NCBI RefSeq assembly: GCF_963921235.1
Contig: NC_086126.1
Location: forward strand, 17,732,001-17,796,000
Direction of reading: 5' to 3'
Origin: Mobula hypostoma
Taxonomy: Eukaryota
DNA: 64,000 nt
Below the pieces are notes generated by a model, which was not told where the DNA came from, made no database searches, and saw only the letters and a program-made list of their open reading frames with translations. Below, one piece after another: positions 5,432 to 60,345 of this stretch (within the stretch, counting starts at the first letter, position 1; each line of letters starts with the position of its first letter). The position numbers and the translations under genes were made by a program.

Positions 5432-5483
5432 TCCGCGCTCCGAACAGCTTCTGCTCATTATTGTGTTTGAAACCGACGAGGAA

Positions 5484-5858
5484 ATGCCGGATCCAGCGAA
5501 ACCCGCTCCCAAGAAGGGCGCCAAGAAAGATTTGTCCAAACCAGCGAGCAAGACTGGCAAGAAGCGCAAGAGGTCGAGGAAGGAGACTTACGCCATCTAC
5601 ATCTACAAAGTGATGAAGCAGGTTCACCCCGACACCGGCATCTCCTCCAAGGCCATGAGCATCATGAATTCATTCGTCAACGATATTTTCGAGCGCATCG
5701 CGGGCGAGGCTTCCCGCCTGGCCCATTACAACAAGCGGTCAACCATCAGCTCCCGGGAGATCCAGACCGCCGTGCGCCTGCTGCTGCCCGGGGAGCTGGC
5801 CAAGCACGCCGTGTCCGAAGGGACAAAGGCGGTGACCAAGTACACCAGCTCCAAGTGA
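5484..5858 (+). CDS. H2B: Histone H2B (replication-dependent)
   Basis: [12 protein letters not shown]...[20 protein letters not shown]...[10 protein letters not shown]; true ATG at 5484; intronless. Confidence 0.98.
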
Positions 5859-15902: not shown

Positions 15903-16546
<644 letters not shown>

Positions 16547-27783: not shown

Positions 27784-27858
27784 TTGCTCTGGGCCGCCGC
27801 CTTTCGCTTTATTTCTCATTCAGTCTGATTGGGAGAAGCATTTTCCAGAGTCGCCGAC

Positions 27859-28494
27859 ATGACCGAGACAGCACCCGCCGAAACGGCTCCTCCAGCCGCA
27901 CCCGCCGCCGCAAAGAAGACTCCCAAGAAGAAGGCGGCCGGCCGGAGCAAACCAGCCGGTCCCAAGCTGGGCGAACAAATCGATAAGATTGTGGCGGATT
28001 GTCGCGACAGGAAGGGGATGTCCGCTGTGGCCATCATGAAGGCTCTGACCAGCAGCGGTGTCGATGTGGGGAAACGTCGCGCCCAGATCAGGATGTGCAT
28101 CAAGAAGAGAGTGGAAAGCGGCTCCTTGGTTCAGACCAAGGGCGCGGGTCTTTCGGGATCCTTTAAATCCGGTCAAGGAAAAAGTGCCGTGAAAGCGGTG
28201 AAGAAAGCGAAAAAGCCATCGGTAAAGAAATCTCCCAGCAAGAAGTCCGGCGCCAAGAAACCAGCAGCTAAAAAGGCGGCAGCGAAGAAACCAGCGGCTA
28301 AAAAACCAGCAACTAAGAAACCAGCGGCTAAAAAGGCGACAGCGAAGAAACCAGCGGCTAAAAAGGCGACAGCGAAGAAACCAGCGGCTAAAAAGGCGGC
28401 AGCTAAGAAACCAGCGGCGTCGAAGCCAAAGAGCCCCAAGAAACTCGCAGCCCCGAAGAAGAAGGCGGCCAAGAAGACAGCAGGCAAAAAGTGA
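27859..28494 (+). CDS. H1: Histone H1 (divergent globular domain)
   Basis: ATG 27859; [14 protein letters not shown]; Lys/Ala/Pro tail of [10 protein letters not shown] repeats; 211 aa. Confidence 0.95.
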
Positions 28495-29444: not shown

Positions 29445-29861
<417 letters not shown>

Positions 29862-33420: not shown

Positions 33421-34853
33421 TACAGTGCCTATAAAAAATGTTCAGTCTCCTTAGAAGTTATTGTGTTTTATTATTCTGCAATGGATTTAATTTGGCTTTT
33501 TTGGCACTGATCAACAGAAGACTATGGTGTCACAGTGAAAACAGATCTCTACAAAGTGATCTAAATTAATTGTAAATATGAAACAAAATAATTCATTGCC
33601 TTTGCATTCACCTCCTTCTAATCAGTAATTAGTTGGTGCACCTTTGACAGTATTTACAGTTGAGTCTGTGTGGATAGGTGTCTATCAGCTTTGCACATCT
33701 GAACACTGCAATTTTCCCCATTCTTCTTTACAAAACTGCTGAAGCTCTGTCAGAATGCATGGGTTGGTGAGCGAACACTTCTTTTCAAGTCCAGCCACAA
33801 ATTCTCAATTGGATTGAGGTCTGGACTCTCACAAAGCCACTCCAGGACATTAACTTTGTTGTTTTAAGGCATTCCTGTGCAGCTTTGGTTTTGTGCTTGC
33901 GGTCATTGTCTTGCTGGAAAATTAATTTTCTCCTAAGTCGCAGTTCATTTGAAGACTGAATTAGGTTTTCCTCCAGGATTTCCCTGTATTTTGCTGCATT
34001 CATTTTACCCTCTACCTTTACGTGCCTTTCAGGGCCTGCTGCAGTGAAGCATACCCACAGGATGATGCAGCCTCCACCATACTTCACGGTAGGGATGGTG
34101 TGTTTTTGATGTTGTGCGGTGTTTGGCTTACTCCAAACTTAGTGTTTGTGATGGTCAAAAGGTTTAATTTTGTTTTCATCAGACCATAGAATCTTCTTCC
34201 AACTAACTTCAGAGTCCCCCACAATTCTGGGAAACTCCAGGGAAGATTTCATGAGAGCATTTTTCAACAGTGGCTTTTTCTCTGCCACTCTCCCATAAAA
34301 CTGCGACTGGTGAAACACCCGGGCAACAGTTGATGTATGCACAATCTCTCCCACCACTGAAGCTTGTAACTCCTCTAGAGTTATCATAGGTCTCTTGGTG
34401 GCCTCCCTCACTGGCCCCTTCTTGCATGGTCACTCAGTTTCTGAGGATAACCTGCTCTTGGCAGGTTTACAGCTGTGCCATATTCTTCCCACTTCTGGAT
34501 GAGTGACTTAACTATACTCCAAGGGCATTCAGTGACTTGGAAATGTTCTTGTATCCATCTCCTGGCTTGTGTTTTTCAATTACCTGTTTGCAGAGCAGCT
34601 CAGAGTGTTGATTTGTCTTCACGGTGTAGTTTCTCCCAGGATACTGACTCACCAGCAGTTCGACCTTCCACTTACAGGTGTACTATTACTACACAATCAA
34701 TTGAAACACCCTGACTGCACAGGGTCATCTTCATTTAACTGATCATGTAACTTCGAAAACTAATTGGCTGCACCAGTGATGATTTGGTGTGTCATATTAA
34801 AAGGGGTGAATACTTATGCAGACAATTATTTTGTGTTTTAGATTCATAATTAA

Positions 34854-50399: not shown

Positions 50400-53370
50400 T
50401 GTAACAGAAGTTTAACGAGAGAAATGTGTGGTTTAAAGAGGATGAGGAAAAGCAAGCAGGCTGCGAGTGGAACGGCTCAGGATTTCCGGAGCGAAGGTAT
50501 TTTACTACTCGGAGTAAAGAGAGGCAAGACTGCACAGGCGCGTGACATCAGCCAGTAGAGCGGGAAAAGGTTAAAAAGACCGCCATATCCAGCGGGCAGC
50601 AGAGTGAGAGGGCTTTGGCTCAACGGGCTTAGGTGGTAACGAGACGAGGTAGGTTTACCTGTGTTAATTGCGGAAAGGAAGTATGTGTGTGAGACCGGTG
50701 TTCTGTGCTCGGTGTCCGATGTGGAAAGTTCTGGAGTCTCCCAGCCTCCTGGATGGCAATATCCGCACCCGGTGTGTTGAGCTGCGGCTCCTAAGGGACC
50801 GCGTTAGGGAACGGGAGTTGCAGCTCATTGACCTTTGTCTGGTCAGGGAGAGCGAGGAGGTGATAGAAGGGAGTTATAGGCAGGTGATCACACCGGGACC
50901 ACAGGAGACAGACAAGTGGTTAAGAGTCAGGAGAGGGAAGGGGAAGAGTCAGGTACCAGAGAGTAGCCCTGTGGCTGTCCCCCTGAACAGTAAGTACTCC
51001 TGTTTGAGTACTGTTGGGGGGGAGGGGTGAGATAGCCTACCTGGAGGAAGCAACAGTGGCCGTGCCTCTCACACAGAGTCTGGCCGTGTGGCTCAGAAGG
51101 GCAGGGAAAGGAAGAGAAAGGCAGCAGTGATAGGGAACTCTTCAGTTAGGCGATTCTGTGGATGCAGGAAAGAAACATGGATGGTAATTTGCCTCCTAGA
51201 TGCCAGGGTCCTGGAAGTTTCAGATTGCGTCCAAAATATCCTGCAGTGGAATGGAGAACAGCCAGAGGTCGTGGTACATACTGGTACCACTGACGTAGGT
51301 AGGAAAAGGGAAGAGGTCCTGAAAACAGTCCACAGGGAGTTAGGAAGGAAGTTGAGAAGCAGGAGAGCAAAGTTAGTAATCTCGGGATTACTGCCGGTGC
51401 CACGTGACAGTGAGTATAGGAATAGAATGAGCTGGAGGATAAATGAATGGCTGAGGGATTGAAGCAGGGTGCAGGGATTCAGATTTCTGGATCATTGGGA
51501 CCTCTTTTGGGGCAGGTGTGACCTGTACAAAAAGGACAAGTTGCACTTGAATCCCACGGGGACCAATATCTTTACGGGGAGGTTTGCTACTGGGGAGAGT
51601 TTAAACTAGAACTGTTGGGGGGTGGGAACTGAACTGAAGAGACTGGGGAAGAGGCGGTTGGCTTACAAATAGAGAAAGCTTGGAGATGGTGTGTGAGGGA
51701 GGACAGGCAAGTGATAGAGAAGGTACGTGCTCAGACCAACGGTTTGAGATGTGTCTATTTTAACGCAAGGAGTATTGTGAACAAAGCGGATGAGCTTAGA
51801 GCATGTATCACTACTTGGAGCTATGATGTGGTGGCCATTACAGAGACTTGGATGGCTCAGGGACAGGAATGGTTACTTCAAGTGCTGGGTTTTAGATGTT
51901 TCAGGACGGACAGAGAGGAAGGCAAAAGAGATGGGGCGTGGCACTGTTGATCAGAGATAGTGTCGTGGCTGCAGAAAAGGAGGACGTCATGGGAGGATTG
52001 TCTTCAGAGTCTCTGTGGGTGGAGGTTAGGAACAGGAAGAGGTCAATTACTCTACTGGGTGGTTTTCATAGGCCACCCAATAGTAACAGGGATATCGAGG
52101 AGCAGATAGGGAAACAGATCCTGGAAATGTGTAATAATAAGAGTTGTCGCGGTGGGAGATTTTAATTTCCCAAATATCGATTGGCATCTTCCCCGAGCAA
52201 GGGGTTTAGATAGGGTGGAGTTTGTTAGGTGTGTTCAGGAAGGTTTCTTGACACAATGTGTAGAAAAGCCTACAAGAGGAGAGACTGTACTTGATTTGGT
52301 ATTGGGAAATGAACCTGGTCAGGTGTCAGTTCTCTCAGCAGGAGAGCATTTTGGAGATAGTGATCATAATTCTATTTCCTTTACAATAGCATTGGGAGAG
52401 CTAGGAACAGAAAAGCGTTTAATTGGAGTAAGGGGAATTATGAGGCTATCAGGCAGAAACTTGGAAGCTTAAATTGGGAACAGATGTTCTCAGGGAAAGG
52501 TACGTAAGAAATGTGGCAAATGTTCAAGGGATATTCGTGTGAAGTTCTGCATAGGTATGTTCCAATGAGACAGGAAAGTTATGGTAGGGTACAGGAACCG
52601 TGGTGTACAAAGGCTGTAGTAAATCTAGTCAAGAAGAGAAAAGCTTACAAAAGGTTAAGAGAGTTAGGTACTGTTAGAAATCTAGAAGATTGTCAGGCTA
52701 ACAGGAAGGAGCTTAAGAAGGAAATTAGGAGAGCCAGAAGGGGCCATGAGAAGCCCTTGGCGGGCAGGATTAAGGAAAACCCCAAGGCAGTCTACAATTA
52801 TGTGAAAAGCAAGAGGATAAAATGTGAAAGAATAGGACCTATCAAGTGTGACAGTGGGAAAGTGTGTATGGAACCGAAGGAAATAGCAGAGGTACTTAAT
52901 GAATACATTACTTCAATATTCACTACAGAAAAGGATCTTGATGATTTTAGTGATGACTTGCAGCGGACTGAAAAGATTGAGCATGTAGATATGAAGAAAG
53001 AGGATGTGCAGAGGTTTTGGAAAGCATCAGCTTGGATAGGTCACTGGATGGGACGAGATGTACTGCAGGCAACTGTGGGAGGCAATGGAGAAGATTGCTG
53101 AATGTCTGGCGATGATCTTTGCATCATCAATGAGGATGGGAGAGGTTCCGGAGGATTGGAGGGTTGCAAATGTTGTTCCCTTATTCAAGAAAGGGAATAG
53201 GGATAGCCCAGGAAATTATAGGGCAGTGATTCTTACTTCAGTGTTTGGTAAGTTGTTGGAGAAGATCCTGAAAGGCAGGATTTGTGAACATTTGGACAGG
53301 CATAATATGATTAGGAATAGTCGGCATGGCTTCGTCAAAGCAGGCCGTTCCTTGCGAGCCTGATTGAATA
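50400..53370 (+). mobile_element. CR1 LINE with 5' UTR, ORF1 (Zn finger/coiled coil plus SGNH esterase) and ORF2 5' part; degenerate
   Basis: CARCPMW..RCVELRLLRDRVRE.ELQL, AAVIG.S, VVVHTGT.D, LHLN; YFNARSI, ITETW, GDFN, SDHN. Confidence 0.9.
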
Positions 53371-53736
53371 TTTCAAGCATTCATAATGTATTATTGGGCT
53401 GTTAATATACGTTATGTGTGTTCTTGGTTATAGTGGACTAATAAAAATGAACGACCACTTTGGGTTGATTTGGAATTGAAAGCTGTGAAACAATTTTACT
53501 TAACTTCGTTATTAGGCTTCTTTACCTGTACAATTAGCCAAATTTTCTAGTCTAAATTTATATCCTATGATTAAGCAGTCATTATGAATTTGGTACCAGT
53601 TTCGTAATTTTTTTTAATCTGACAAAATTTAACCTTCTTAGTTTAATTTATCGAAACTATTCAGTTAAACCTTCACTTAGTGATCTTGCCTTTTCTCTTT
53701 GGAGGAATAAAGGAGTTTATTCCTTCATGTATCTGT

Positions 53737-54216
53737 TCCAAATTGCTTAAGGACAACAAAGTCATGGTATTGGAGTGGCCATCACAAAGCCCTGACCTCA
53801 ATCCGATAGAAAATTTGTGGGCAGACCTGAAAAAGCATGTGCGAGCAAGGAGGCCTACAAACCTGACTCAGTTACACCAGTTCTGTCTGGAGGAATGGAA
53901 CTAAATTCCAGCTACTTACTCTGTGGAAGGCTACCCAAAACATTTGATGGAAGTTAAACCATTTAAAGGCAATGCTACCGAATACTAACAAAGTGTATGC
54001 AAACTTCTGACCCACTGGGAAACTGATGAAATAAATAAAAGCTGAAATAAATCATTCTCTCTACTGTTATTCTGACATTTCACATTCTTAAAATAAAGTA
54101 GTGATCCTAACTGACCTAAGACAGGGAATATTTTCTCGGATTAAATGTCAGCAATTGTGAAAAACTGAGTTTAAATGTATATGGCCAAGGTGTATGTAAA
54201 CTCCTGACTTCAACTG
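53737..54216 (+). mobile_element. Sleeping Beauty-like Tc1 3' end (transposase C-terminus plus right IR/DR)
   Basis: LKDNKVMVLEWPSQSPDLNPIENLWADLKKHVRARRPTNLTQLHQ; two DRs; ends gtgtatgtaaactcctgacttcaactg-TA. Confidence 0.92.
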
Positions 54217-54219
54217 TAG

Positions 54220-54925
54220 TATTAATGGCAGGACTCTTGGCCATGTGGAGGATCAGAGGGATCTTGGGTTCCGATTCCATAGGACACGCAAAGTTGCCAC
54301 TCAGGTTGACTCTGTGGTTAGGAAGACATATGGTTCATTGGCCTTCATCAACAGTGGGATTAAGTTTAAGAGCCAAATGGTAAATTTGCAGCTCTGTAGA
54401 ACCCTGGTCAGACCCCACTTGGAGTACTGTGCTCAATGCTGGTCACCTCACTAGAGGAAGGATGTGGAAACCATAGAGAAGGTGCAGAGGAGATTTACAA
54501 GGCTGTAGCCTGGATGGGGAGCATGCCTCATGAGAATAGGTTGAGTGAACTTGGCCTTTTCTCTTGGAGCGACGGAGGATGAGAGGTGATCTGATAGAGG
54601 TGCAGAAAATAACGAGAGTCATTGATCATGTGGATGCTCAGAGGTTTTTTTTTCCCAGGGCTGAACTGACTCGCACGACAGGACATAGATTTAAGGTGGA
54701 TGGAAGTAGGCACAGAGGAGATGTCAGTGGTAAGTTTTTTTATTATGCAGAGAGTAGTGAGTGCATGGAATGGGCTGCCGGCGGCAGTGGTGAAGGTGGA
54801 AACAATAGGGTCTTTTAAGCAACTCCTGGATGGATACATGGAGCTCAGAAAAATAGAGGGCTATGCGTAAGCCGAGGTAGTTCTACGGTAAGGGCATCTT
54901 TGCTGTAGGTTTTCTATGTTTCTAA
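54220..54925 (+). mobile_element. CR1 3' end
   Basis: QRDLG, LVRPHLEYCAQ.WSP, RRMRGDLIEV, ttctatgt tail. Confidence 0.85.
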
Positions 54926-55049
54926 CATTATCTAAGTTTTAGATGAAATTCCTAAATCTGCAGAAATTCTGCACTAAGATAATCTGTCAATTTTGGGGAA
55001 ATTACAGTCACACATTACTCAGTTGCTTTTACAATTTTCCATAACCTGC

Positions 55050-58659: not shown

Positions 58660-59561
58660 CTAACGTTTCCTGAGTTTCAAAATCTGATTCAGTGGGTATT
58701 TCACGGCATTCTTTAGTTCCTCTCGGAATTTGCTCTGAGTCAGGGCGTAAATACACGTGTTGGTGCAGGAACTGAGAATCTGCAGCATTCCCGATGCTTG
58801 GTCTGTGATGTAACGGGGATCCGTGACAGAATAAACAAAACTCATTGAAATCCGTCTATAGATAGAAAATACCACCGTTGTTCCCCACAACAATATGAAA
58901 CTACCGGTGATGATGAAGAGCAAAACGATGGATTTGCGTCGGTTCTCCATCTCCCGGTCCTTGTCATTCTCTCCACTCTTTTGTCCCCGGAGCCCCCTGC
59001 GGGCTCGACTGGCCGCTAGAATCCGCCTGACAGTCAGAATATTGAACAGCAACATCAGACAGAATGGGAAACAAGGGACTAAAATGCGGTGAAACACTTC
59101 AAATGCTGACCATGAGGGAGAGTTTGTGAAGCTCGGTGTCATAACACAATCCCAGGGAACACCGTCAATTATTTCTCCAGCCCCATACACAAAGCCCCAG
59201 GGGACAGTCTCCAAACAGGACAGCACACTCACTGTCCCGATAACCACAGCCGCCGTTCTCTCGGTGCAATATTTTGTTTTCAGCTTCTCACAGCAAATAG
59301 CCACAAATCGATCGACGGTGAAAGCGACAGTCAGCCAGACTGAGGTCGCAGTGCTCGCAGCAACCAACCATTCACCGAGTCTGCACACAGGAGTGATTCG
59401 CAGGAATGATCGGGGAAAATAAATCCGAGCAGTCCACTTCATCAGCGGATCGGAGATAACGACCAGGAGATCGGCCGCTGCCTTTCCCACCAGGTAACGA
59501 GTGACACATTTGGAGAGACCGCACTTTCCCCGGGACAGGATCACAATCGTCACCAAGTTCG
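58660..59561 (-). CDS. GPR139/GPR142-like class A GPCR, exon 2
   Basis: ANLVTIVILSRG, AADLL, AFTVDRFVAIC, SCTNTCIYALTQSKFREEL; acceptor ctctcttccag; AATAAA directly after the stop. Confidence 0.9.
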
Positions 59562-60345
59562 CTGGAAGAGAGACAGGGATCAGCAACTTGAGGAAGTACT
59601 GAGCAGACGCCAATGCAGCAGTTTGGTGGAGACAGTAAAATAAATTACACAACCTCACAAACAGACATGACGCCTCTCGTTGTTTCCATCACAGGGAAGC
59701 AGGGGAGAGGAATTCAACGTCCAGCAGCAAACTCGGTGCCGTGTCAGATGTCTGTCAGATAGAGATATGATGGAAAACGTTTCACTCTGAAGCACGAGGT
59801 TAGCTTTGTTAATTGACTCTGCAATGAGTTCAGTCTGTTTTCCATCAGCTGTTCACATTCAGTCAAACCGCAGACATTTATTTAAAATCGACAATAGATT
59901 CGATCTACAACAGGAAGGTCCGCACATTTGCTAAATTGTTACTACCAATCATTTGTTTGAGTGTTGCTCCTAACTCAGAAATTCACTCACATATAAATGC
60001 AGACGATCAATCGGTATAATCTCCGCGGGCTCTATAAACACAATATTTGCAGATGCTGCCAGACCAAACGCACAGAGACGGAACATCCCATTATTGATCA
60101 CAAACCGCTGGAAGAACACTGTCTGACCAGCTCAGTTCCACCCATGTCGGCGGATTCGCTAAATTCCTGCAGCGGTTTGTTTCTAGATCCAAATTCCAGC
60201 ATCTGTCGTCCCGGTGTTTCCACTCCATTCCTGAAAAGCGGAATACCGGGACTGGAATGTGAGAGTTTAAACCGGCGGCAGAATCAATCACAACATTGGA
60301 ATTAAACTTCAACATCCGCCCACGACAGCTGACACTACGGCTTAC

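Follow-up and report, generated by a model that had tools for sequence, protein, structure and literature searches.

A one-ended Sleeping Beauty-clade Tc1 remnant in the devil ray Mobula hypostoma, very probably a trace of horizontal transfer between bony fish and rays

We describe a piece of DNA of the devil ray Mobula hypostoma that we take, with high confidence, to be a one-ended, dead remnant of a Tc1 transposon from the Sleeping Beauty (SB) clade. In this reading, the family of the remnant moved between bony fish and rays by horizontal transfer, long after the two lineages had split. The remnant lies in a 64-kb stretch of DNA that was analyzed as a whole (the window), where positions 53740-54218 comprise the C-terminal ~83 codons of a Tc1 transposase gene, a right inverted repeat of 228 bp (IR/DR type), and a TA dinucleotide. 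An initial annotation of this DNA, made from the letters alone, had pointed to a transposase C terminus and an IR/DR ending in TA, both of which can be read directly from the sequence; it had placed their start at 53737, and we find that the homology begins at 53740. The features of the remnant and of its surroundings are collected in Table 1.

Table 1. Features of the SB-clade remnant and its flanks (positions in the window)
Feature	Position	Strand	Basis
Left part of CR1-group LINE (APE-type endonuclease and start of RT)	51693..53378	+	Pfam, tblastn
AT-rich filler, mid-copy host-lineage repeat	53379..53739 (360 bp)		Coverage in organism A
C-terminal remnant of SB-clade Tc1 transposase gene	53740..53988	+	SB100X match, Pfam DDE_3, nucleotide identity
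Right inverted repeat, IR/DR type	53989..54216	+	88.4-91.2% identity to teleost-type copies
Inner transposase-binding repeat (in right inverted repeat)	53993-54019	+	Alike with the outer repeat at 18/27 positions
Outer transposase-binding repeat (in right inverted repeat)	54190-54216	+	25/27 positions identical to the SB end
TA target-site dinucleotide, right junction	54217..54218		Read directly; coverage in organisms B-D ends at 54218/54219
Right part of the same LINE (C-terminal RT and 3' tail)	54219..54930 (3' limit approximate)	+	tblastn

By its gene content, the window is devil-ray DNA, from Mobula hypostoma. The GPR139-like exon at 58660-59556(-), 4.4 kb from the Tc1 piece, is identical to a M. 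hypostoma protein at 298/298 residues in a pairwise comparison from residue 35 onward, and the few N-terminal differences between the GPR139-like ORF and this protein correspond to the spliced first exon of the gene model. The best 120 matches of the ORF (58660-59658, minus strand) are all elasmobranch GPR139-like receptors, with M. hypostoma first, in keeping with the cartilaginous-fish host that had been proposed from the letters; the host is not a teleost. Paralogues from Heptranchias, Heterodontus, and Mobula account for dozens of these 120 matches, a sign of how hugely this receptor family is expanded in elasmobranchs. Elsewhere in the window, ORFs of a histone cluster (H2B, H2A, H1, and H3) are found at 5463-5858, 16013-16546, 27829-28494, and 29445-29855(-), amid LINEs and Penelope-like elements, and a M. 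birostris gene model beside a GPR139-like paralogue also bears histone domains. A run of Ns occupies about 60.8-61.4 kb.

The coding part of the remnant retains the end of the transposase catalytic domain. In the frame starting at 53737, it reads ..LEWPSQSPDLNPIENLWADLKKHVRARRPTNLTQLHQFCLEEWN (also written ..LKDNKVMVLEWPSQSPDLNPIENLWADLKKHVRARRPTNLTQLHQFCLEEWN) up to an in-frame TAA at 53902-53904, downstream of which it continues as ..VEGYPKHLMEVKPFKGNATEY to the natural stop at 53986-53988; a deletion of 9 nt lies between 53920 and 53921. The remnant peptide matches Pfam DDE_3 (E 7.8e-09) at profile positions 102-145 of 146. The NPIEN motif, which bears the final E in SB100X, is present, and both D residues of the DD34E triad fall in the deleted part. 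The copy is cut off at 53739/53740 and the 5' part of the element is absent, a truncation point set by contigs from three organisms (B-D, below) that extend upstream of 53740 into transposase sequence absent from the window. The copy is dead: it is truncated and carries a stop codon and a deletion. It cannot encode a transposase, and it cannot be mobilized, because only one transposon end is left.

The noncoding part has the architecture of an SB end. A long repeat of the IR/DR type with an outer and an inner binding repeat is present at the right end only, and as in SB, the binding repeats are ~170 bp apart and are followed by a TA target. The inner and outer 27-mers are alike at 18/27 positions. 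A search for the outer 27-mer that allowed 3 mismatches gave a single match in the window and 0 matches in 100 shuffles, so that no left inverted repeat was detected in this way anywhere in the 64 kb. TA is likewise present at the right end only, and the two inverted ends with duplicated TA are absent from this copy; the single end and single TA mark it as a fragment and not as a family with a different structure.

The closest relatives that we find are SB itself and its natural counterparts in bony fish. Among all PDB chains, the remnant matches only the catalytic domain of SB100X (PDB 5CR4, chain 5cr4_A), with 47/53 residues identical (E 1.3e-27). A protein word search gave 891 relatives; of the best 120, every one that bears a name comes from a bony fish (Oncorhynchus mykiss, O. 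tshawytscha, Salmo trutta, Sander lucioperca, and Denticeps); matches in the ESM Atlas are to generic Tc1 clusters only. For comparison at the DNA level, we used two copies from a rainbow-trout assembly (L001 and L002; GCA_900005705.1), a near-complete element on a Logan contig (L004), and a metagenome contig (L003). By BLASTN, the entire 479-bp ray piece aligns end to end with L004 and L002, and over the ungapped columns of a MAFFT alignment, it is 91.0% identical to L004, 89.4% to L002, and 90.0% to L001; the initial annotation had set its floor at about 70%, and the identities to these three natural teleost-type copies span 89.4-91.0%. Coding and noncoding parts, the DRs included, are about equally similar: 89.6-90.8% nucleotide identity to L001, L002, and L004 in the ORF, 88.4-91.2% in the inverted repeat, and 90-92.5% in the spacer between the binding repeats, with the highest value in the inner DR (96.7% to L004). 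Among themselves, the teleost-type copies share 94.5-96.5% identity.

Likeness to pT2-type vectors, for which BLASTN gave no match in PLSDB plasmids, was judged via SB100X at the protein level, natural salmonid copies, and the last 27 nt of the element. In L004, these 27 nt are the SB end known from publications, given for instance as the T-prclvd primer in PMC5224488, and the ray outer 27-mer differs from it at 2/27 positions. It had been suggested in the initial annotation that both protein and inverted repeat differ from salmonid-derived SB only at scattered positions, and the figures agree (47/53 residues, 88.4-91.2%, and 25/27 positions, respectively). Members of the SB clade share more than ~80% identity of their coding sequences, and 61% with the sister SB-like clade (PMC9777934). 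The ray copy, at 89.6-90.8% in its ORF and 47/53 residues, lies within the range of the SB clade. A second Tc1-like transposase remnant, decayed and far more distant, is found at 33662-34351(-), with ~34% amino acid identity to the trout SB-type ORF and 75% nucleotide identity over 81 bp to 53753-53833; beside the SB-type piece, it indicates at least two Tc1 families in the ray window.

The remnant sits between two collinear parts of one CR1-group LINE. ORFs in the left part match Pfam Exo_endo_phos_2 and Exo_endo_phos; its tblastn alignment to LINE ORFs elsewhere in the window extends to about 53354, and its frame (..LIEYFK) runs to about 53378. On the right, the outer repeat and TA are directly followed by the LINE frame (..INGRTLGHVEDQRDLG..), a clean junction, and 54221-54514 aligns by tblastn to residues 24-121 of another LINE ORF. 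Measured against an intact RT ORF, the left part reaches about residue 47 and the right part picks up near residue 212, so that about 0.5 kb of the LINE RT core is missing. The embedding in host CR1 sequence that had been described therefore holds at the right junction only, where the LINE adjoins the element; the left side adjoins 360 bp of unrelated filler (53379-53739), in which we found no ORF and which has no match elsewhere in the window. We suggest that the LINE received a complete element at a TA, as the clean right junction indicates, and that a later rearrangement or deletion would have removed ~1.1 kb from the 5' end of the element together with ~0.5 kb of the LINE, leaving 360 bp of unrelated host repeat in place of the removed sequence. 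The remnant would then have decayed, acquiring its stop codon, the 9-nt deletion, and point changes.

Contigs of public sequencing runs from four organisms (A-D), aligned with the window at a likeness of at least 88% in 30 bins, separate the element from its surroundings. Organisms B, C, and D cover 53740-54219 only, at summed depths of 1e5-2e6, and at this likeness, their coverage of the LINE flanks and of the filler is zero. Organism A covers 30/30 bins, at summed depths of ~1e5 in the LINE flanks, ~1e4 in the Tc1 piece, and ~1e3 in the filler, which points to the host (ray) lineage and identifies the filler as a host repeat. From what each of them covers, A would thus belong to the ray lineage and B-D to bony fish. 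The SB-type family appears to be multicopy in the ray lineage.

Individual positions allow the differences to be apportioned. At nine listed sites (53826, 54000, 54023, 54032, 54066, 54137, 54152, 54181, and 54186), organism A has the letter of B-D and the window has another, and these sites represent private decay of the window copy. Organism A shares the letter of the window, and not that of B-D, at 53805, 53989-91, 54022, 54100, and 54134, and its letter at 54130 is a third one; we read these positions as ray-lineage markers, according to which the ray has an SB-type subfamily of its own. In rough terms, this subfamily would differ from most teleost copies by a few per cent and the window copy would have decayed by a further few per cent, figures that come from the contigs listed, which are biased toward window-like ones.

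In all, there are 35 sites at which the teleost copies agree with one another and the window has a different letter, with 21 transversions vs. 14 transitions, and only one of the 35 changes is attributable to CpG decay. Such an excess of transversions is unusual for plain neutral decay. Many of the transversions fall in three clusters of differences (53900-53921, 53948-50, and 53989-91), which, as small indel misalignments, may explain part of the excess. By codon position, the differences in the ORF number 2 at position 1, 4 at position 2, and 2 at position 3, with no third-position excess.

Together, these comparisons argue that the family was very probably transferred horizontally between bony fish and rays. 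Cartilaginous and bony fish split about 450 million years ago. Ray and trout copies that are both dead, ~90% alike, and as similar in noncoding as in coding sequence cannot have come by vertical descent from an ancestor of that age, and the LINE flanks, which have no counterpart in organisms B-D, serve as an internal control for vertically inherited sequence. Copies that are 89-91% identical, a spacer that is 90-92.5% identical, and a LINE with no match at 88% or above in B-D amount to the excess similarity by which horizontal transfer is recognized. Horizontal transfer had already been proposed in the initial annotation, and the ~90% identity in both ORF and noncoding inverted repeat, the elasmobranch host, and the LINE control all speak for it. 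As a rough estimate, the transfer would date to tens of millions of years ago and not be recent, given how far the window copy has diverged privately and how slowly elasmobranch sequences are usually taken to evolve.

If the SB clade had instead been present in the common ancestor, its likeness would have to be kept by selection on the transposase and its binding sites. The DRs are indeed functional binding sites, and it is the inner DR that is best kept (96.7% to L004), but the ray and trout copies are both dead and yet 89-91% alike, the spacer (90-92.5%) is as similar as the ORF, and the ORF differences show no third-position excess. Neutral sites would moreover be saturated over ~450 million years, and the LINE flanks, which are inherited vertically, lack a counterpart at 88% or above in organisms B-D. 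The abundance of TcMar elements in rays and skates (PMC12361510) speaks for vertical descent; that the SB clade was found in no cartilaginous fish of the survey in PMC9777934 speaks against it. We therefore regard vertical inheritance as very improbable. An assembly artifact, in which bony-fish DNA from prey, index hopping, or a chimeric read was built into a ray contig, seems to us equally hard to credit. Neither junction is bridged by any of the ~100-nt repeat contigs or by a read that we found, and the locus is known from the assembly alone, as such an artifact would allow; the piece is, however, a mutated fragment, its end coincides exactly with a TA in a LINE with collinear halves, a Mobula gene lies 4.4 kb away, and ray-lineage contigs bear the same diagnostic letters as the window copy. 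The case against contamination made from the letters, which had invoked the host LINE, is strengthened by these observations.

A real transfer with another partner, whether a parasite, a prey invertebrate, or a virus acted as carrier or rays were the donors, is unlikely, though less so than either of these. Related Tc1 groups are reported from parasites and lampreys (PMC3516227, PMC12441823), SB is reported from one mollusc (PMC9777934), and the present data would fit either direction of transfer. Weighing on the other side, an invariant 29-mer of the element has 0 matches in 2.9 million viral contigs, and the far greater abundance and diversity of the family in organisms B-D and, according to the literature, in ray-finned fish point to bony fish as the reservoir.

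The SB clade has been reported from 107 ray-finned species and one mollusc and from no cartilaginous fish (Jia et al. 2022, PMC9777934), and our literature search found no published report of it in rays. With the members of that clade, the ray copy shares the C-terminal sequence, the right IR/DR, the TA, and 89-91% DNA identity to salmonid copies; it differs from them in its host, in its one-ended, 5'-truncated, and mutated state, and in its ray-lineage substitutions (PMC9777934). For cartilaginous fish, a single SB/ZB-group element has been listed to date, ZB-Calmil of Callorhinchus milii (PMC9777934 and its supplementary table), which, like SB, has ~200-bp TIRs and a TA target but belongs to the ZB-like branch, with a coding sequence 52-54% identical to the SB groups, and has a chimaera and not a ray as its host.

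High nucleotide identity across such a deep divergence has a precedent in another Tc1 group. That Tc1 elements move between aquatic vertebrates is well documented (PMC3516227, PMC7070016). The Group 1 Tc1 elements of teleosts and lampreys likewise show high nucleotide identity across a split of more than 400 million years, and this identity, together with their patchy distribution, has been interpreted as horizontal transfer in an aquatic setting (Kuraku et al. 2012, PMC3516227). The identities in that group are higher (95-99%, vs. 89-91% for the ray copy), and PCR for Group 1 elements was negative in elephant shark, thornback ray, and dogfish (PMC3516227). Group 1 is probably a different clade from the ray element. 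The ZB-like elements of lampreys are, we presume, the same as Group 1. It is as ZB-like that the lamprey elements are filed in the supplementary table of PMC9777934.

The remnant leaves the understanding of such elements unchanged, since the horizontal spread of Tc1 among aquatic vertebrates is established and the copy is inert; what it adds is that the host range of the SB clade extends to a cartilaginous fish, so that a known phenomenon is recorded in a further host. It also offers a testable origin for the Tc1/mariner excess in rays and skates. A 2025 genome paper gives Tc1/mariner shares of 2.3% in rays and 3.3% in skates vs. 0.14% in sharks, and the word "horizontal" is absent from it (PMC12361510). 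We can imagine, while thinking it rather doubtful, that the SB clade invaded the genomes of batoids (rays and perhaps skates) from bony fish and so seeded their Tc1/mariner expansion. If this were true, it would be the first record of the SB clade in a cartilaginous fish and would account for Tc1/mariner shares of 2-3% in rays and skates vs. 0.03-0.14% in sharks and chimaeras, and younger, possibly intact, naturally active SB-type copies may exist in rays.
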